DNA of 59,826 nucleotides, filler included, from Bipalium vagum (GCA_037834085.1; 3 parts of 3 records of this genome joined end to end with filler, not necessarily neighbours in it), one strand, 5' to 3'; positions 8,079 through 19,085 are shown, numbered from the whole stretch's first letter. The notes: generated by a model from the letters alone, not told the origin. Program-made: numbers and translations.

Positions 8079-8307
8079 ATGAATAATGTGTTAAAGTTTC
8101 AATATACTTTTGGATTAATTGTGTTTTACAAGTGTTTATCCGTTGTAACTGGTGCGAATGAATGCATCGATAACATCGGTATTGTAAGAGGTGCTGGTAC
8201 TACATGGAAATCTAACGGTTGTGACTGTAAGTGCACATTCAGTAATAAATTTCGTCAAAATATCGCGACTTGCATTCCATGTAAAGGAATAGAAAATAGA
8301 GAAACCG
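8079..8307 (+). CDS. Exon 1: signal peptide + VWC-like Cys module
   Basis: MNNVLKFQYTFGLIVFYKCLSVVTG/ANECIDNIGIVRGAGTTWKSNGCDCKC...TCIPC. The C..G..W...C.C.C spacing resembles the N-terminal half of VWC; followed by a 47-nt intron. Confidence 0.8.
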
Positions 8308-11300
8308 GTTTCATTTCTATTTTTACCTTGAATCTATTCATTGTTTAATAAAAGGACATACGGTGACAGCAGCCGCTGATTCAGTGTATAACGTACATAA
8401 AGAGTTCCATATATTTTGTCAACCTTACCATCATAATATCTTACCTCACGTGGTATTGAATAGTACAGATTTTATAAGATTAAATGATCGTTGGGTAAAA
8501 AGTGGTGGACAGTTTCAAAGAAGAGGGGAAATAATGTGTGCATTTTGCTATACGAGATATTTCACTGGTGAACTTCGTTGTTATACTCCAATAAGTAAGA
8601 TTTCATTTTTAAAATAAGTTATACATATATTTGAATAAAAAGAAAATTATTTTATATTGATTTTAAACAAAAATATGATTTTTTTATCGAGCTGTAATTT
8701 ATTTTTAACATTTACAATAAAATGCATATTGAAAATTAAGAAGAAATTTTTTGAAATAAACGCATTTCAATAATTTTGTACAATTTTTTTCTAAATATTC
8801 CTTATCGTGAGACATGTTTCGAAATATTAACAGTTCGTCATCAGTCATTCATATTTAAAACTACAAATTTTAATTACCTAAACGGCGGTCTAATTTTTAA
8901 TTTAAATATTTAAATGGTGGAAATTATTATCTTATTTTAAAAATATTTTTATAATTAATCCAAGAATGCATTGACAATCTATTGGCTTCTTTTTTCTCCT
9001 GTTTGAATGTTCATTTGTTGCCACTCTTATTAATAACGATTCGCATGTCTTCGTTCATCGTTTTTATCAAAATTATTCATAGTTGCTCGAAATTCTTCTG
9101 CATTAACTTTACCTTTTCACACAACAAAATTCAAAGAATGATCATTAAAATTCATGTTCTAAAACATAGATTATCATTTTTATATTTAATTATATTAATA
9201 AAATAAGCAAATGTTATACAGAAAAATTTTATTTTCAACTATTTATTTATATACTCTTAACGTAATATATTTAAATATGAAAAAAACCCCGGTGTCAGTT
9301 AAATATTAGGTTGGTACATAAGTTCCCGCGTTTTAGAATTTTGCCATTCTTGCTATTTTTTAGCTATTTTTACTGAGCAAAAATAATTATTTTGAAAGCG
9401 CTTTTTTAAGCTACAAGCATGTAATCATTATTCATTCAATAACTTAATTATACATATATTTTTTAGCTCTACAAATGGATATTCCAGGCAGCGAAAAATT
9501 CATTTTCGGCATTTATTATATTTTGCCTTTTGCCATGGTCAGAAAGCTACAGAAGCAGCACGAGACATTTGTGAGGTGTATGGAGCTAATGCAATAGGTG
9601 CGAGGACCACTCAAGAATTGTACAACAAATTCAAAAAGGGTAATTTTGATCTCGAAGATAAATTTCGCTCTGGTCGACCATCCAAATTCGACGAAGAACA
9701 TCGCCAAACATCCAGAGAACTTGCTGAAAAAATTGGCTGCACTCATCCGACAATTCTCAGACACTTTCACTCGATCGCTTTTGAGCAAAAATTTGGAGCT
9801 TGGATACCTCATAAACTCAGCGACCAAGATAAAGAAAATCGCCTCCAAATCGCAGCACAATATCTTGCTCGACACCGAGAGACATGCAGCCACACGGAAC
9901 GATATCTGCAGAGAATCGTCACAGGAGACGAGAAATTCTGTCTCTACGTCATATGAGACAGAGGAAGGAGTGGGTAGTTAAAGGAGTCGGGCCTGACATA
10001 AGTAAAAAAAGAACTTAATCCAAAGAAAACAATGATATGTGTATGGTGGAACTGGGAGGGTTTAATGCACTGAGAAATACTTGAGAAAGATAAGACTATT
10101 AAATAAGAACTCTATGTAGCCCAGATGCAAAGAGCATCTTTAAGTTGCAAATATAATCCTTATGAGAACCATTATAGATGGGGACGATTTAAAATTAACG
10201 ATATCGATTTAAGTGGTTATTTTCGCAACATGAGGCGGTTTATAGAATAACCTTTGGCGAGACAAGAATTTATTTTGTGTACATTTCAACTAGTGTATTT
10301 GTTATGAAATATTTTTTTCTATATTTTGAAAAATTTTCTATATATTTTGAATATTTTTCTATATATTTCTGCATAACCCTGTATTTGAATAGTTATTTAT
10401 TTTACTTAAAATATTTTTAGTAATCACCCATGCCAAAAGGTGCTTACCTTACTGACGAAAAAATTAAAATTCGATTTTTAAAGAACATGAAATCTAAAAG
10501 AAAAATATCTCTTAATATTGATAGGTCTCAAAATGTCTATTAGAAATTTTAATAAAAAGGTGAACAATATGGTATAAAAAAGAAAACACGAAGAAAAATG
10601 AAGTTAACGGAAAGGCAAAAGAATCAAATCAAGTTGGAAGCAATGAAGAACTGTTTGAATAGTAACCAGATTAAGCATAAAATTAACATCTCAGTTACTA
10701 AAGAACACGTTACTCATATATTAAGAACATTACCTAACATAAATGAAAGAAAATGAAGATAAAACAAAGATTAAACCCAGTAAATATTGAAAGGTGGTTG
10801 GAGTTTGTAAAAAAAGGCATGTATTTGAAAGATGAATGGCAATCAGTAATTTTTCTGATGAGAAACAGTTCAACCTAAATGGTCCTGATTGTTCTACATG
10901 TTATTGGCGTAATTTAGAAGCAAACCAAAAAAAAATAGGACGAGAAGAGATTACGGTGGGTTAAATGTTATGATTTAGGGTGCTTTTAGCTGGTTACCAA
11001 TACGCAATATTTCCACACGAACAACTTCTAAATCATACACGGAAATGTTAGAAGATGGTTAAATCCCTTATTTGGAAAACAATGATGTTATTAATTTTAT
11101 TATCAACAAGATAACGCCCCCATACAAGTTTCACAACTGTCAAAGGCTTGATTTTCGTGCAAAGAAATTTTTTTAATTGAGTGGCCAACTTGCGATCCTA
11201 ATATAAACTCCTTCGGAAATCTTTGGGGAATATTATCTTCAAAAGTTTATCAAAATGGAAGACAGTTTCAGACTATTTCTGAAATAAAGCAATGTACCTT

Positions 11301-14300
11301 ATGGTATTGGGAGAAAATTGGCGATTCTATATTGAAAAATCTAGCCGGTTCAATGCCAAATAGAATTTTTAATTTAGTGAAATCCCAGGAAAAACTTAAA
11401 CATTAATAAAAAATATCAGATAACGAAGTTTTTTCGTTTTTTCAGTTGTTTAAATTTTTTAGCCACTGGGATTCTCATTTATCTACCGATTAAAATTTTC
11501 TTTTTTTAGTTTGCTGCTTAAACATGTGAGTTTCAAATTTTCTGTATAATTAATGTTACTAACCATTATTCTCTAGAAGAGGTGCTCCAAAAATTCGTTG
11601 GACAAATCAAATATTCGGGAAATTATTTATTACGAATGGAAAAAAAACACAAGCACAAATGAAACTGTCTCAAAACTTAACGAGGTGCTTGGTGAAAACA
11701 CAATTCAGCTGCGAACAGTGAAAAATTGGTTTAAAAAATTCAATAGTGGCGATTTTTCATTTGGAAGACAAAGAAAGGTCTGGAAGGCCAAAAGAGCTGG
11801 AGGATTATCAAATTATTATGGACAAAACAAATCAATTAGTGCTAAAAAATCGATTATAAGTTAAATAAGAAGCGATACACTCATAAGAAACTATCTGAAA
11901 GCGTTAGGATTCACTTGTAAACTCTAAAAATGGGTTCCCACCAACTAGCTGAAAAATACAAGTTGGATCGCATTGAAATTTGTTCAAGACTTCTCGAAAA
12001 AAACCGAAATGACCCTTTTCTCGACGGGATAGTCACTTGCGATGAAAAGTGGGTCTATCATGACAACATAACCAGACAAAGATCGTGGTCGTTGAAAGGA
12101 AAACCTTCGCAAAAATTGAAAAACGCAATCTTACACGAAACAAGGTTTTTTTATGTATTTGGTGGGATTATTTACCAGGAGTTTCTCAAATCCGGGGAAA
12201 CTATTAATTCTGATGTCTATTGTGACATGCTAAGAAGAGTTCATGCCATTATGAAGGAAAACCGGAGCAGTTTGATAAACCGAAAACAAGTGATTTTCCA
12301 CCAAGATAATGCCAAGTCTCACAAATCAATGAAGACATTGAAGGTTATTCAGGAATTGAACTGGACTCTAATGGAACATCCGCCATATAGTCCCGATATC
12401 GCCCCATCCGATTTTTATTTGTTCTGGGTATTACCTAATATTATTTATGTTATCTGTGTATATTTTTTATTAATAAAAGACTAATGCGCTTAAACGAATG
12501 TTTCTTTTTTGTGCTGTTTTCTATAAATATAGCGCTTTTCTTAACATAATATTCAGAAACATATTGGAAAACAAGATTTCCAAACAAAATTTTATCTCTG
12601 ATAATAATAATCGCAATAAAATATACTCAATTAATCAAGTGCGCTTAAACGAATGTTTACCAGTAAATATTGAAATTTAAAAGAAATGATGCTAGAATAG
12701 TTTAAATAAGTAATTCATTAAAATGTTATTAAAATCTACTAAATTATATATATATTTCAGCTTATGAACCAAAACTTGTACTTTCTGAATCTATTACTTA
12801 TTACGTTGTTGGCAAACCACTTACACTTAGGTGCTATGAAGAAAGGAAACCAAAAAAACTTGTTTTTAGAAAGGTTTTAATTAAAACAATGGCAGGAATT
12901 AATTCTGGCTATATAAACGGTGACAATGTAGGAGAAATATGTTTTGAATGCCATCATATTTGCACATGGTGTTTACCTATAAAAAAGACCAAACACTGTT
13001 TAAAACCGCATTGTTAGATGTTTAATAATTATTTGTATTTTTTATTATCGCAAATTATTTGATAATGATAACAAATTTAAAATACTGAAGAAATATAAAA
13101 ACTATTAATCTGAGTTTCCAAATTAAAATAATCAATAAAAAATAAGCCAGTTTCTAATCAATTAGATTTTTATGTTTAGAATAAATGCCTGAAGATTTAA
13201 ATTTTAAGTTAATATTTTAAAAAATTATTATTTATCATTTAATTAAAATAAATAAATACCAAAAATTTGATTATCGTCTCCAGTAGATTTTTTACGGTTA
13301 TTTACCAGTATTCTCATTTTGTGTTCTCTATTTAAAATTGGAATCGAATTTTTATCTGAGAGACCTTTACAGTTATAATAAGTAGTTCAAAAAATTAGTT
13401 TCGTTGAATTTTTTAAAATAAGGACCTCACGCGTAAATTAATGATTATTAAATGATTTTAATTTAAAGTTTTAAAAATTAATAAATTTTTTAAGTTTCAG
13501 TTTCTTAAATATTTTTTAATTACAATTTTAAATAAAATATGCAAGTGTTGGTAAATTTTTATTTATTTTTATTTTATTTATATTTTTTTAATTTTATTTA
13601 TTTAATTTAAAAAAAAAGTGATGTCCATGTTTGAAAAGTTTGTTTAAGTAATTAGCTTTAATGAAATATATTATTATTGATTTGATTTTATACTATTATT
13701 AAAAATGACAACACAAGAATATAACTGCAGCAAGATACGGAGGGATGACTTTTCTTTTCTAGTCCTGAATCATTCTTTTAAATTTGTAAAAATACTATTC
13801 GTTGTAAAAACTTAATAAAAAATTTTTGTAAAATTCTAAATCTGCTGAAGTTTAAGGTTTAACTGATTCACTATTTATTTCTTAAACTATTGATTTATTA
13901 TTTGAATTTTATTTTTCATCGATTTAGTGTTAAATAAAAATTTATTATTTATTGCTATAAAATAAAGTATTAAATTTAAATATTTAAAAAATTTCCTTCT
14001 GATAGTAATATTGCTTGATTGGTTTTTAATTACTATCAATGCTTTTAAATTAACATTTATGATCTTGAATTTTAATTTTATCAACGAGTTATTTTTCATA
14101 TTATTAGGATTATTGTTATTATTATCATTTTTCTTCTTGGGAAACCAGAAACGCATAAATTTCCTAAATAAGTGCTAAATTTTTTTTGCAAAACAGTGCA
14201 AATTATTATTTTTAAAAATGCAATTACTCTATAAATATTGCAAAATTACTGAAAATTATTTATTTAAACCCATTATTTAAAATTGTAGGTTTTAATATTC

Positions 14301-16921
14301 ATTATTTAAACAAAATTGAATTTATAATTTGCAGTATTTTTAGAATAAATAATGCAAAATTATTCAAAAAGTATAAAAATTGAAATTTTAATTTTCTATT
14401 AGAAAGAGAAATCTGGGAAAATTCTTAAAATCAATTTCAATATATTTAGTGCACTTATTTTTAAAAAATTTTTGCTTTCTCATATAAAATATTTTCAGCT
14501 TTTACATATATTGTGCCAGAGGATTTCAATTCTTATTTTGCTGATAGAGAAACATGGCTATTTTGCCTTCCAAATTCACTACCGATGAGTATATATCTTA
14601 ATACCAGGGAGTTTGAAAGAATGGATAATCAGTTGGTTTATGTTGGAGGAAAATATAGTAAATCAAACATAGATATATGTGCTTATTGTTATACAAATAT
14701 GATAACATTATCTCGGAAATGTTACAAAAAAATTAGTTAGAATTTAATAAATTAATAAGTTAAAAAAAATTCATAATTGTCCAGAAAAATATTCAATACT
14801 TTTTTTGTTTATACATATTAGATTAGTTATAAATGTCATTGCTTATTTAAATTTTTAATTCATTTTGTTAAAAAGGCAATTATTAGTGATTAATAGTTTA
14901 GATTAATTTCCAATATATTCATCAAATTTTGTGCGGTTTTGATTTAAAACTTTTGACAAAGGGTAAATTTACGTATTACGCAAACATGCGGAATGGTCAT
15001 ATCAGCAGATAAATAAGACTTAATTTATCTGCTATCACTAAATATTGACAGCGAAGCGACAATAATATTCTATCAAATGAAGGAAAACTTGTCAATTTTA
15101 AGGGACAGTGAATAACAACCGAAAGGTTTGGCAGACATATCGTGAGAAATGCGTAACAAAGCCTATTAAAGGCACTCGACATATAACATGAGACTTATGT
15201 GTAGTCCAACGTGTATTATATGGCACGATCAATCGTCGCTTGAGGGATAATGATCTTCTTTTTCCTCCAGCAATCAAGCCCTTCCTTCCTGCATCTTACA
15301 ACAGCATCACCAAAAAAGGAGTTAGCAGTCATCTTCAGTTATGAATCAAAGTTTCAGATGAATAATACACAACAGTTCATTTGGCATAGGAAAGGCACTA
15401 GACTGTAGGAACGGTTTGTCTTCCCTCTTCATTGCAAAAGTTCATCTCAATGCATTTTATGGGGATTGTTCTGTAGAGATAGCTATAATAATTTGGTTAG
15501 AGTTTAACATCGGTTTAATTCAGAAGACTATGTTGAGCTATTAGATCAGTACCTCCTTCTTTTCTATCAAATAAACAACATCTAATTCTACCAGCAAGAT
15601 AATGCACCAATCAATACTTCCAAAAAGACAAGAGATTGGTGTGATGATCATGCCATTCCTCTTCTGTCGTGGGCAGCGATCAGTCCCAATGCTAACCTCA
15701 TGGAAACACACATGAAACATCAACTTCATCTTATGGCCATAAAGCTTACCACCTGTGACGACTTATTGAGAACCTGTCAGGCGCTTTGGAGCACTATCAA
15801 AGAATATTAATATATATGCACTATATGTATATACCTGAAATTATATCTCTAAAATTATGTGAAATATTGAATTTTTTTACCAGACAGTTCAGTGTAACAG
15901 ACTGTAAATATTGTTAGAGGTTAGATAATACTTTTAGGATCGTGTTTAGTTTCCAAGCCATGTTTTTTTATATCCCGTTTTTTTTCATGTTTGTTTTTAT
16001 CAAAAATAAATTTACTTTTAAACATACAAATGAATAAAAACAATAGAAAGACAATTAAGGAAAAAATTTATTAATCAAACTTATATAATAATCAAATATC
16101 ATATTGGGATCTATTTTCAAAAAATTTTGCCTGAAAGTCCATTCAGCAAGATAAGACTTCAGTACCGTTCCATATATTCCCCTCAAAATTTTGCTTGCTC
16201 AAACGTCTTGCTTTTTAATGTTCCCCAGATAGATTCAATTCGCTGAGTATTGACACCGGTCTCTTTATTCACAAAATTATATTTGTGATTGACTGTGCGA
16301 TGAGTAAAATTTTATTCTTAGCCAATTGGCAATATGCTTTTTATTCATCACTCATTACACATAATCCTTTTGTAACCACAGTTATATTGTTGCCTAAGGT
16401 AAAAAATATTTCAGCAGGAATCATCCACTATCACAAACACCCATAAGCCTTGTTCCGAGGCACAATCTTTTTGATATTTAGGCTTGAAAGTGTAATATTT
16501 ATATATTCTAATTTTAATTTATATATTCTGACCCAAGGTGTTTAAAGAATGGGCTTCCTCATTATAAATTGTTGCTCCAAATTAACAACCTTTTCAATAA
16601 TAGGCAAAATTGTGATACTTCTTTTATCGGGTATAATTTCGGTGTATCTTCTTGCTGGTTTTAAAGATATGTAAACAATGTTTGAAACCAAAGTTAGTGC
16701 AATCAGCATCCTGTCCTCAAAGTCTGTTTTTCCATACTACTATCCGTACCAAATCCAAAAATTTATTTCCAAAAGGAAGAAACGAATACAAGAAGAACTG
16801 AATTACTAAAAATGACATCAACCTTCAGTGAAAAGGGAGCTAGAGATTAGATAATACTTTTAATTAAATATTTTTTTGAACTGAAATCCGTTTTATTAAT
16901 GAATATAAAGGAAGATTAACC

Positions 16922-16987
<66 letters not shown>

Positions 16988-18254
16988 CATTTTTTTAATT
17001 TTTAAAAGGTACTCCTCCTGAGATAATTACTTTTCCCAGGGAACTCATTTATCCTATGGGAAGGCAAATAAATATTACCTGTGTTATAATACCTGAAGAT
17101 AATTCAGAATATTTTCCGGAAATAATTATAAAAGATAAGACCAAAAAACCTCACCCACGAACAATTAATAAAGACAACATTGATGAAATATGTTTATATT
17201 GTGACATTCCTTGTAGAGATTGCAATTCCAATCCAGTTAAAACTTCACAAAGATGTTATAAGCCCCAAAGTTAGTTGTTTTTAATTCTTACTAAAAAAAA
17301 ATTTTATTTTATTATTAATTTTAACAAATTTCTATACTAATCTTCTTGTCAATTCTTTAATTGATTTAATAAAAAAATAATATTGAACTCCTTTTATAAC
17401 CTTAATTAAACAAACGATTCTGATATCTAACTCATCTTCCCATTTGACATTGGTCTTAATATAGATTATTTTTATGATTAACCATCTAAAAATTAACTTT
17501 TATTTTAAAGTAATTAATAATCTATCTTAATTAAAAATCTTTGTATAATCATGTAATTTATATTTATTAATATACATTGTAACTCTGTTATAGTGAAATA
17601 TCGACTAGTGTCATTAATTTATGTAACAATTGTGTGACGTCAATTTTTAAGTGCAAGTTTTGGTTTCGATATCATGAATGATTATTTTTTTAGACATAGC
17701 GTTATCAACCTGGGTTAAAACGACAAAAAAATTTTAAAAACAAAAAAATAAAATATGAATAGTTTAAGATATCTTGTTAAAAAATTCTATTTTCTTCAAT
17801 TTGAAATAATTTTATTCAATTTATTCAAAATTATCAGCTAAAAGTTAAATTAATATGATCTATTATAAAAAGTGGAATGTAAAAGAAATTTTTTGACAAG
17901 TGAAGAGAAAATTGCAGTTATTGATTCAATAAAAAAGAAAAAATGGTGTTGGGCTAAAAAAATTTTAGAACACTATCAAATTTTTATTATTATAAATAAT
18001 TATTTAGAAAGCCTATTTATACCTCCATCATATTACACTACTACCGATACAGCAAAGATAAGCTGCCAACCGGTAACCTTAAAGGACACGAAAATTGTAC
18101 TGAATACAACAGAATATAACAAACTTAATGACCAAGAATATGAAATTGGAGGTAAATTAGACACTACCAAAAAAAATATTTGTGGTTTTTGCTATAATAG
18201 TATTTTTACAAGTGAATTGCAATGCTTTTATTTTTTAAGTAAGTTAACTGTTTG

Positions 18255-18313
<59 letters not shown>

Positions 18314-18727
18314 ACTTCGATAATAAAGATATTTTATAGAAGACTTACCAAAAGTAGTACTTTATCCTAAAGGTGGATATTATATTCCGAAAAAGCAAAT
18401 CAAAGTTTATTGTGATTTCAATCAAAAAGTTGAAAAATCCTACTACAGAGGACATAAAATTAGTGTAACTTATCAGGGTAACACTTATCATGAATACTTT
18501 CTGAATTCTTCGGATGTCGGGCCATTGTGCTTTATCTGTAACCATTACTCTCGTTTTACTTTAAAAATAGAAAAAAAAGAAACATGTCTGAATCCGCATC
18601 GTTAGTTTTATAATTTGTAAACGTTTCAAACATATTCTTGTATACTTCAAAACTTTGAATTCATATATTTATTTATTTGTTAATTTAAACAGTTTATAAG
18701 AAATACTTTTATAAAGCACATCAATAA
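8079..18727 (+). CDS. Uncharacterised secreted/cell-surface protein, ~581 aa: signal peptide + VWC-like module + three A-B pairs of Cys-rich (possibly Ig-like) domains; 8 coding exons
   Basis: Exons 8079-8307, 8355-8594, 12761-13012, 14499-14735, 17009-17269, 18008-18238, 18340-18600 and, less certain, 18693-18727. All introns are GT-AG phase 1 and join into one stop-free frame. A exons resemble each other and B exons resemble each other. Confidence 0.85.
8355..8594 (+). CDS. Exon A1 (Cys-rich domain type A)
   Basis: aaag|GA..ATAA|gtaag, 240 nt; FCQP..VLNSTDF..GG..MCAFCY..CY. Confidence 0.85.
9306..10135 (+). mobile_element. mariner element, 3'-truncated
   Basis: TA followed by a TIR-like left end ttaggttggtacataag; transposase motifs FKKGNFDLEDKFRSGRP, WIPHKL, IVTGDEK, MICVWW; frameshifted. 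Confidence 0.9.
10430..11405 (+). mobile_element. Tc3-like (Tc1 family) transposase relic
   Basis: MPKGAYLTDE.., SDEKQFNLNGPDCSTCYWRNL, QQDNAPI, EWP..PNINSFGNLWGIL; multiple frameshifts. Confidence 0.85.
11598..12430 (+). mobile_element. mariner (DD34D) transposase pseudogene
   Basis: TVKNWFKKFNSGDFS, WVPHQL, IVTCDEKWVYHDN, FHQDNAKSH, HPPYSPDIAPSDFYLF; frameshifts, 3' end lost. Confidence 0.92.
12761..13012 (+). CDS. Exon B1 (Cys-rich domain type B); absent from the ORF track because it has no start codon
   Basis: ttcag|CT..CATT|gttag, 252 nt; YEPKLVLSESITYYVVGKPLTLRC...INGDNVGEICFECHHICTWC..HCLKPH. Confidence 0.85.
14499..14735 (+). CDS. Exon A2
   Basis: ttcag|CT..ATTA|gttag, 237 nt; FCLP..YLNTREF..GG..ICAYCY..CY. 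Confidence 0.85.
15100..15800 (+). mobile_element. Tc1-like transposase relic
   Basis: IFSYESKFQ (~15331), FYQQDNAPI (~15586), SPNANLME (~15683); heavily decayed. Confidence 0.65.
15937..16840 (-). mobile_element. Merlin (IS1016/IS1595-like) transposase relic(s)
   Basis: Minus strand: EIIPDKRSITILPIIEKVV..ATIYNEEA (16550-16650), VMSDE*KAYCQL and RTVNHKYNFVNKETGVNTQRIESIWGTLK (16210-16360), the Merlin/IS1595 DDE motifs. Confidence 0.8.
16925..16987. repeat. (ATT)n microsatellite
   Basis: About 20 perfect units just upstream of the exon B2 acceptor. Confidence 0.95.
17009..17269 (+). CDS. Exon B2
   Basis: aaaag|GT..CAAA|gttagt, 261 nt; PPEIITFPRELIYPMGRQINITC...INKDNIDEICLYCDIPCRDC..RCYKPQ. 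Confidence 0.85.
18008..18238 (+). CDS. Exon A3
   Basis: tttag|AA..TTAA|gtaagt, 231 nt; ISCQP..VLNTTEY..GG..ICGFCY..CF. Confidence 0.85.
18255..18311. repeat. (ATT)n microsatellite
   Basis: About 19 units forming more than half of the A3-B3 intron. Confidence 0.95.
18340..18600 (+). CDS. Exon B3 (absent from the ORF track)
   Basis: tatag|AA..CATC|gttagt, 261 nt; LPKVVLYPKGGYYIPKKQIKVYC...LNSSDVGPLCFIC..TCLNPH. Confidence 0.85.
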
Positions 18728-18938
18728 TTTTTGCTGTACAACTGATTGTTTTATGTTTAATCACATTCGTCTGATGTATACCAGAAAGTATTACTCATTA
18801 AACTTCGAGATTTATTGGAAACAAGGAAAAATGAAAAAAGTTTTATAAAAATAAAAAAAATAAAAAAATTGTTTGGTTTAACCAAGACACCCCCCGGGAA
18901 AATATAACCAAAGAAAATCATGAAAAGGGTATAGATGT

Positions 18939-18939
<1 letters not shown>

Positions 18940-18978
<39 letters not shown>

Positions 18979-19085
18979 AATCATANNNNNNNNNNNNNNN
19001 NNNNNNNNNNNNNNNNNNNNNNNNNNNNNTTAATTAATTAANNNNNNNNNNNNNNNNNNNNNNNNNNNNNNNNNNNNNNNNNNNN

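Follow-up and report, generated by a model that had tools for sequence, protein, structure and literature searches.

The genome of Bipalium vagum (GCA_037834085.1) contains what is probably a real protein-coding gene for a secreted or cell-surface protein built from alternating cysteine-rich modules. The window analysed here is a stretch of 59,826 nucleotides (nt) in which three parts of three records of this genome are joined end to end with filler. The gene lies on contig C14029, which has 18,985 bases and about 25% G+C and belongs to a 440-Mb assembly of 272,664 contigs. Seven exons on the + strand appear to make up its 5' part, and perhaps all of it: a leader exon (E1) followed in frame by three pairs of immunoglobulin (Ig)-like modules of two kinds, in the order E1-(A-B)x3.

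Structure of the gene

Three-frame reading of the + strand recovers all seven exons as stop-free stretches. At this base composition the chance of an open frame over 76-87 codons is 0.0004-0.001, and seven such stretches with common motifs are therefore not due to chance. The six domain exons match family profiles made from other contigs with E-values of 1e-22 to 1e-28. An earlier, sequence-only preliminary description of six domain exons lying in frame behind a signal-peptide exon is confirmed, with the coding pieces where it put them. Searches and fold predictions alike were carried out one exon at a time. The exon model was drawn up from splice-site inspection and comparison with paralogues, so that the splice sites given here (a slash marks the exon-intron boundary) are predicted ones.

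8079-8307, + strand: exon 1 (E1), with the start codon, a signal peptide of about 25 residues and a small module of six cysteines, pattern C..D..G..R..W...GCxCxC...CxxC; phase-1 end ACCG/gtttca
8308-8354, + strand: intron 1, 47 nt, gtttca...aataaaag
8355-8594, + strand: exon 2, domain A1, four cysteines, one N-glycosylation sequon, phase 1/1, donor gtaagatt; A profile E 2.5e-24
8595-12760, + strand: intron 2, 4166 nt, full of Tc1/mariner debris
12761-13012, + strand: exon 3, domain B1, six cysteines, phase 1/1, donor T/gttagatg with in-frame TAG; B profile E 6.8e-28
14499-14735, + strand: exon 4, domain A2, four cysteines, phase 1/1, acceptor ttttcag, donor A/gttagaat; A profile E 1.3e-26
17009-17269, + strand: exon 5, domain B2, six cysteines, one sequon, phase 1/1, donor A/gttagttg; B profile E 5.2e-26
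18008-18238, + strand: exon 6, domain A3, four cysteines, one sequon, phase 1/1, donor gtaagtta; A profile E 1.8e-22
18340-18600, + strand: exon 7, domain B3, four cysteines, one sequon, phase-1 acceptor, end C/gttagttt; B profile E 4e-27

All exon boundaries are in phase 1, and none of the six junction codons (GGA, ACT, TCT, AGT, AAA and AAA) is a stop. The introns measure 47, 4166, 1486, 2273, 738 and 101 nt. Cysteines are even in number in each mature module (six in E1 after the leader, four in each A, and six, six and four in B1, B2 and B3), and N-x-S/T sequons occur in four of the six domain modules. The exons add up to 1711 nt (570 codons and one further base), compared with the approximately 581 residues first proposed. 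Completeness at that length is not supported, since B3 ends in a donor and the contig ends 385 nt past it.

In a correction to the preliminary description, the end of exon 1 was placed at 8307 (ACCG/gt) and the obvious gtaaag site at 8280 was passed over because, with the only good acceptor, it would give rise to a stop. The 8307 donor is kept in the paralogue on contig C71789, and the same junction is found in three paralogues or relatives. As noted in the preliminary description, the open reading frame (ORF) list includes E1, A1, A2, B2 and A3 and omits B1 and B3; these two are missing because they have no early start codon.

An AAT microsatellite occupies positions 18935-18985 and reaches the contig end at 18985; it is the probable cause of the break in the assembly a short way past B3. 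Because B3 ends in a donor, the gene may extend past the contig end. A search for a membrane anchor or further exons downstream of family exons in the available loci gave nothing usable, the sequence there being AT-rich.

A large family of related domain exons

Single-exon queries brought out paralogues across the genome, and profiles were made from these. Hidden Markov models (HMMs) of A and B, with which the preliminary description had proposed to look for further copies, gave 22 A-like and 56 B-like matches. A superfamily profile built from 68 copies gave 117 matches, spread over about 35 contigs and all free of internal stops, and these 117 intact domain exons are a lower bound for the genome. 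The domain is about 80 residues long, and over the 68 copies one tyrosine (Y14) and four cysteines in the arrangement C...CxxC...C are invariant or nearly so, in keeping with the consensus motifs originally given for A and B. HMM scores clearly distinguish three subtypes, A, B and G, each with its own hallmark:

Subtype A: IGG...TIC(A/G)(Y/F)C
Subtype B: D-x-G-E-I-C-x-x-C, usually with an extra CxxC, and the end P-H
Subtype G: ICFxCGN...KCY

The A and B profiles align over their full length (hhalign E 4e-5, probability 69%) with the same four-cysteine skeleton, and both score on the G model; thus, as had been suspected, the two are variants of a single domain. Phase-1 AG acceptors were found in 70 of 71 family exons and phase-1 GT donors in 69 of 71, within a few bases of the domain edges. 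Exons of the G subtype are arranged in arrays with introns of 55-90 nt. In one giant sister gene (C212038:630-22674), 22 kb hold a single A exon and, after it, at least 24 G exons, and similar G arrays lie on the minus strand of C216855 and C252910.

Trees of the A and B exons show that the closest relatives of each A-B pair of the window lie on other contigs and not within the gene itself. A3 and B3 are nearest to the A and B exons of C95263 (paired support values of 97/91 and 92/96, respectively), B1 is nearest to the B exon of C71789 (89/91) and B2 to that of C32167 (80/77). The triplicated A-B layout therefore predates a later gene duplication. Terminal branches are about one change per site long, and synonymous sites are saturated because even the nearest paralogues stand this far apart. 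The retention of the scaffold over such a long divergence argues for purifying selection and against pseudogenes.

To look beyond this genome, we searched 1.84 billion representative proteins with the superfamily profile (HMMER) and obtained only 42 hits. Fifteen of these are short ORFs that match the whole domain, and they are the only full-length relatives. They are 36-54% identical to exons of this genome and sort into A, B and G types. Ten were looked up and come from ENA, JGI or Logan records on contigs of less than 1.5 kb, and all seven contigs that were traced lie in metagenome or sequencing-run samples. The relatives' contigs have G+C contents of 23-27% and hold as many as four domain exons in tandem. 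Five metagenome contigs of 843-1421 nt (L067-L071) between them hold exons of A, B, G and E1 type, including four tandem G exons on L068 and, on L070, an E1-type exon, a 48-nt intron and an A exon. At least a few other AT-rich organisms therefore have the family and its subtypes, and a related small animal is present in the samples behind L067-L071.

No annotated proteome within the 1.84 billion sequences has the family, and a word search of the literature turned up no account of one like it. The family is large and intact, and its range is limited to a lineage that has been poorly sampled. The remaining 27 hits are long proteins whose match is confined to profile positions 3-45 (strands A-C), with whole-protein E-values down to 2e-19; all 18 that were tested with Pfam are tandem Ig_2/Ig_3 proteins.

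Fold and relationship to Ig domains

We consider it fairly likely that the A/B/G family is a strongly derived branch of the immunoglobulin superfamily (IgSF). Most likely, it branched from Ig_2/Ig_3-type domains and then diverged past the reach of existing models. The domains are indeed unrecognised, as had been stated: Pfam returned no family at E<=10 for any of the six domain exons in the window. Models predicted with AlphaFold from the family alignment are all-beta with seven strands for both A2 (predicted local distance difference test, pLDDT, 92.8; predicted template modelling score, pTM, 0.78) and B1 (pLDDT 80.7, pTM 0.63), and they agree with the two-sheet, seven-strand Greek-key beta-sandwich of 70-100 residues that is expected of a C2/I-type IgSF domain. 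In Foldseek, the best matches are Ig-like (SALM2, MAdCAM-1, Robo1 Ig5, ICAM-3 D1, NCAM, PVR, CEACAM and LigA), with template modelling scores of 0.55-0.64 and E-values of 0.025 or weaker. A query of the ESM Atlas with an A-type homologue (P0022) yielded nothing usable. A fold search independent of Foldseek placed A2 with CSF-1R D1, PDGFR D1, VEGFR-3 D1, ICAM-3 D1 and NCAM D1 (Z 7.1; 72-76 of 78 residues at a root-mean-square deviation, rmsd, of 2.5-2.9), and B1 with a phage capsid Ig-like domain, C5 MG4 and LigA, followed by CD146 and NCAM2 (Z 7.6). Overall, the fold matches cover 72-83 residues at an rmsd of 2.5-3.0, with Z of 6-7.6 against IgSF domains. Together with the profile matches to Ig_2/Ig_3 proteins, these predictions support the preliminary view of a divergent Ig-like beta-sandwich with extra cysteines.

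The closest comparison is with C2/I-type IgSF domains (Ig_2 PF13895, Ig_3 PF13927; for example CEACAM, D1 of ICAM, VCAM and MAdCAM, D1 of CSF-1R, KIT and PDGFR, NCAM and Robo). The family has in common with them a predicted seven-strand beta-sandwich of about 80 residues and the motif I-x-P-x4-Y-x6-h-x-h-x-C in strands A-B, which scores against tandem Ig_2/Ig_3 proteins. Invariant cysteines fall in the predicted B and F strands, and F offers two candidates (CxxC) for the B-F pairing that marks IgSF domains. The modules likewise follow a signal peptide in tandem extracellular arrays. Classical IgSF genes devote one exon to each domain and flank it with phase-1 introns, and this arrangement is found here at the predicted sites. 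ICAM-type D1 domains also have a second disulfide, as would the family, whose disulfides are deduced from cysteine positions. However, no Pfam Ig model reaches threshold for the family, and no conserved tryptophan, in strand C or elsewhere, was found in the 68-sequence alignment. In the B and G types the F-strand motif is D/N-x-G-x-I-C-F-x-C (followed by G in its fuller form), a shifted variant of the D-x-G-x-Y-x-C of IgSF domains. The family also differs in having an invariant fourth cysteine in strand G and, in most B copies, an extra CxxC in the F-G loop, and its C-terminal half has no detectable sequence similarity to Ig.

Other beta-sandwiches have to be weighed against an IgSF descent. 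We regard it as rather unlikely that the modules are not IgSF by descent, being related instead to macroglobulin (MG) domains, bacterial Big domains or other Ig-like folds, or of independent origin, so that the Ig_2/Ig_3 match would reflect only a common strand A-B pattern. The geometry gives this alternative some footing, since the best matches of B1 include the MG4 domains of C5 and C3, the Big domain of LigA and phage decoration domains at Z 7.2-7.6 over 79-83 residues, equal to those of IgSF domains. The missing strand-C tryptophan, the F-strand motif unlike the classical one, the failure of Pfam Ig models to score the members and a global hhalign probability of only 21% point the same way. 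On the other hand, MG domains (C3/C5, alpha-2-macroglobulin), bacterial Big domains and phage Ig-like decoration domains gave no sequence signal in any search, lack the four-cysteine pattern and occur in a different gene and protein context. All 18 non-family hits tested from the unbiased protein search were animal-type tandem Ig_2/Ig_3 proteins and none was MG or Big, the top structural matches of A2 are nearly all animal IgSF domains, and the exon structure is the classical IgSF one. An extended hhalign alignment further sets the second cysteine of CxxC on the Ig F-strand cysteine, at low confidence.

Several results weigh against an IgSF assignment. Only one of the 68 family members touches a Pfam Ig model (Ig_2, E 0.029), with nothing consistent across the set. 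A Z below 8 indicates a common beta-sandwich and not a specific relative, and for B1 the scores of IgSF domains are equalled by those of macroglobulin domains and of Ig-like domains from bacteria or phages. The Ig similarity is limited to profile positions 3-45, single repeats are weak, and significance comes from summed repeats. Sequence is nevertheless a more specific guide than fold here. In favour of the assignment, besides the matches to Ig_2/Ig_3 proteins, are a weak PDB profile match to carcinoembryonic antigen Ig repeats (E 0.009) and an hhalign probability of 89.7% over strands A-C against Ig domains cut from the long hits; the latter is partly circular, the domains having been chosen from those very hits. 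A derived IgSF branch remains the reading that we favour, with the residual doubt described above.

With respect to architecture, giant tandem-Ig proteins of the hemicentin, Dscam, sidekick and contactin class also combine a leader with many Ig-like modules, as the sister gene on C212038 does. The family differs from these proteins in the sequence of its domains, in showing no partner domains such as FN3 or EGF, and in having yielded no membrane anchor so far. It is a new sequence family of known fold and architecture and not a new type of protein. An ordinary IgSF repertoire exists beside it in this animal: canonical I-set matches number at least 140 in the genome, all of them outside the family contigs, and some lie in very long open frames of the kind seen in titin/twitchin-like genes. 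Matches to the nuclear-receptor zinc finger (zf-C4) number at least 58, and together with the I-set matches they mark the genome as that of an animal.

One gene or several

The B exons close on a conserved N/GTTAGTTT, a phase-1 donor whose T at +3 makes an in-frame TAG. In the window this site occurs at 13012-13020, 17269-17277 and 18600-18608, and it is also present on C203413, C71789, C95263, C65565 and L069 (555-565). Donors with T at +3 (GTT) end 8 of the 11 B exons. In seven of the eight the donor reads GTTAG or GTTAA, so that the exon is followed at once by a TAG or TAA in frame; among 43 G-type exons, just 3 carry a GTT donor (Fisher p 2e-5). The same eight bases, GTTAGTTT, follow a B-type exon of another species (L069). 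For B3, the end C/gttagttt is either a donor to exons beyond the contig or, if unspliced, would be read as ...H-R-stop.

Such a site invites the reading that the three A-B pairs belong to two or three adjacent genes, or to one gene with alternative ends. Each B exon would then be the last coding exon, or able to be, with N/GTTAGTTT supplying a TAG stop right after the domain and yielding products such as E1-A1-B1 alone. We judge this, the chief rival of the one-gene model, to be unlikely. Beside the bias in donors, it draws on the compact E1-A-B unit of C71789, which has nothing further within the remaining 400 nt, on C95263 and C32167, where no domain exon follows within 1.5 kb past the B exons, and on the B-to-A gaps of 0.45-2.5 kb, which are much longer than the 55-90 nt introns of the G arrays. 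Yet A2 and A3 both start at phase-1 acceptors, and neither has its own start codon or leader. The 900 nt ahead of A2, of A3 and of the internal A exons on C65565 and C203413 contain no E1-like exon. A scan for an ATG, a hydrophobic leader and a phase-1 donor, run with positions 13549-13614 in intron 3 set aside, found none between B1 and A2 or between B2 and A3, and recovered E1 as a positive control. Leader exons of E1 type occur only ahead of a first A (in the window, C71789, C242940 and L070), and the genome counts are 15 A and 11 B exons versus 3-4 E1-type exons. The alternation is repeated on C65565 (B-A-B-A) and the A-to-B order on five further contigs. The scarcity of E1, the lack of a leader at A2 and A3, their phase-1 acceptors and the recurring alternation thus indicate one gene, E1-(A-B)x3, in agreement with the modular gene of phase-1/phase-1 exons originally described.

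The sequence of the site itself also favours splicing. The residue encoded by NGT varies (C, S, R or G) while GT is fixed, which is the mark of a splice donor and not of a C-terminal residue, and GT is therefore conserved as a donor. The extended match of the B-exon end to the GTAAGTTT-type donor of G exons points the same way. A different objection is that the gene is dead, its exons being decaying remnants split by transposon insertions and not expressed. Transposon debris does lie in introns 2 and 4, and the gene is possibly cut by the contig end. We nevertheless consider decay highly improbable, as the seven exons are open, the invariant cysteines and tyrosine and all phase-1 splice sites are retained, and the transposon pieces are confined to introns. 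Moreover, the scaffold has been kept at about one change per site from the nearest paralogue, which requires purifying selection.

Some features still tell against a single E1-(A-B)x3 gene as drawn here. The GTTAG ends of the B exons, with an in-frame stop right behind, also fit B as a last exon. The 3' end, any membrane anchor and further domains may lie beyond B3 and the contig end. The only public sequencing run with this DNA is a DNA run, a point also open to the view that the gene is not expressed, and splicing rests on comparative evidence.

Between a last exon and an ordinary donor there is room for an intermediate role, and the B-exon site may be a weak donor that gives short isoforms when it is left unused. 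In its boldest form, the proposal would be that the A/B/G exons are a previously undescribed, taxonomically restricted IgSF branch with a four-cysteine B/F/F/G pattern, expanded to well over 100 domains in one poorly sampled animal lineage, and that N/GTTAGTTT serves a dual purpose. Splicing would add another A-B pair and failure to splice would give a stop, so that a graded series of secreted proteins could end after any B. We offer this combination as a speculation that is doubtful as a whole. Should the length of the protein indeed be set by the GTTAG donor with its stop, this would be an economical route to an isoform series.

The exon 1 module

An E1-type exon followed by a phase-1 intron of 46-55 nt and an A exon was seen four times. 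Besides the 47 nt of the window, the intron measures 55 nt in C71789, 46 nt in C242940 and 48 nt in L070, a metagenome contig of another organism. All four E1 exons begin with an N-terminal hydrophobic leader, after which they have the pattern C-x-D-x4-5-R-x5-W-x3-G-C-x-C-x-C...C-x-x-C in common; the module packs six cysteines, with CxCxC and CxxC, into about 45 residues.

The preliminary description called this exon VWC-like, which we do not uphold. No Pfam family, VWC, PSP94 or other, matched any of the four E1 modules at E<=10. There is no match to PF00093, and the ten-cysteine pattern of VWC with CxxCxC and CCxxC is not present. The best PDB profile match is the N-terminal domain of beta-microseminoprotein (PSP94), at a non-significant E of 1.5 over 28 residues and without a Pfam match, and this identity was likewise dropped. 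What E1 has in common with VWC and the beta-microseminoprotein N-terminal domain is the short cysteine pattern G-x-x-W-x3-5-C-x-C-x-C, so that "VWC-like" is a resemblance of pattern only.

Proposed product and role

In the protein that we envisage, exon 1 would provide a signal peptide and the small six-cysteine module, sending the chain into the secretory pathway, and the six further exons, spliced in frame, would each contribute one Ig-like beta-sandwich, with A and B alternating. Within each domain, the cysteine in strand B, the CxxC in F and the cysteine in G could form two disulfides, the classical B-F bond and an extra F-G staple, and the additional CxxC pair of most B copies could form a third. 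The product would thus be a disulfide-bonded, N-glycosylated string of modules, either secreted or tethered at the surface. The hydrophobic leaders, the even cysteine counts and the sequons are all features that fit passage through the secretory pathway.

Its job is likely to be extracellular binding, that is, adhesion, matrix or recognition, as far as can be gathered from this architecture. The recognition or immune role suggested in the preliminary description was not supported. In A as in B, loops and strands have about the same mean column entropy, so that there is no sign of hypervariable, CDR-like loops and no particular pointer to diversified recognition; immune recognition is therefore no more likely than adhesion or a part in the matrix.

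The family adds a large set to the known Ig-like extracellular modules, one that is invisible to Pfam and not in the annotated proteomes among the 1.84 billion sequences. It would also be a clean case of an Ig-type scaffold re-stapled by extra disulfides, with two subtypes coming to alternate along the chain. More generally, gene finders working on fragmented, transposon-laden assemblies can miss entire families of this sort.

Transposons and neighbouring elements

The exons are scattered among transposon debris, as first described, and G+C is 30-36% in the transposon stretches versus 18-25% around them. Intron 2 contains at least two Mos1-type mariner copies (9396-9953 and 11577-12481). Mos1-type helix-turn-helix (HTH) regions at 9396-9953 and 11577-11861 match Pfam HTH_48 at E 6e-17 and 3.5e-17, respectively, and a DDE transposase piece at 11921-12481 matches Transposase_1 (E 1.4e-10) and DDE_3 (E 1.4e-6). 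Introns 2 and 4 hold more Tc1-like ORF pieces without a Pfam match, probably at 10556-11403 and 15244-15807. Upstream of the gene, fragments of a Polinton/Maverick-like element lie on the - strand at 477-2319. The ORF at 995-1189 matches DNA_pol_B_2 at E 3e-4, below the Pfam cut-off, and is flanked by cysteine-rich ORFs that have no Pfam match.

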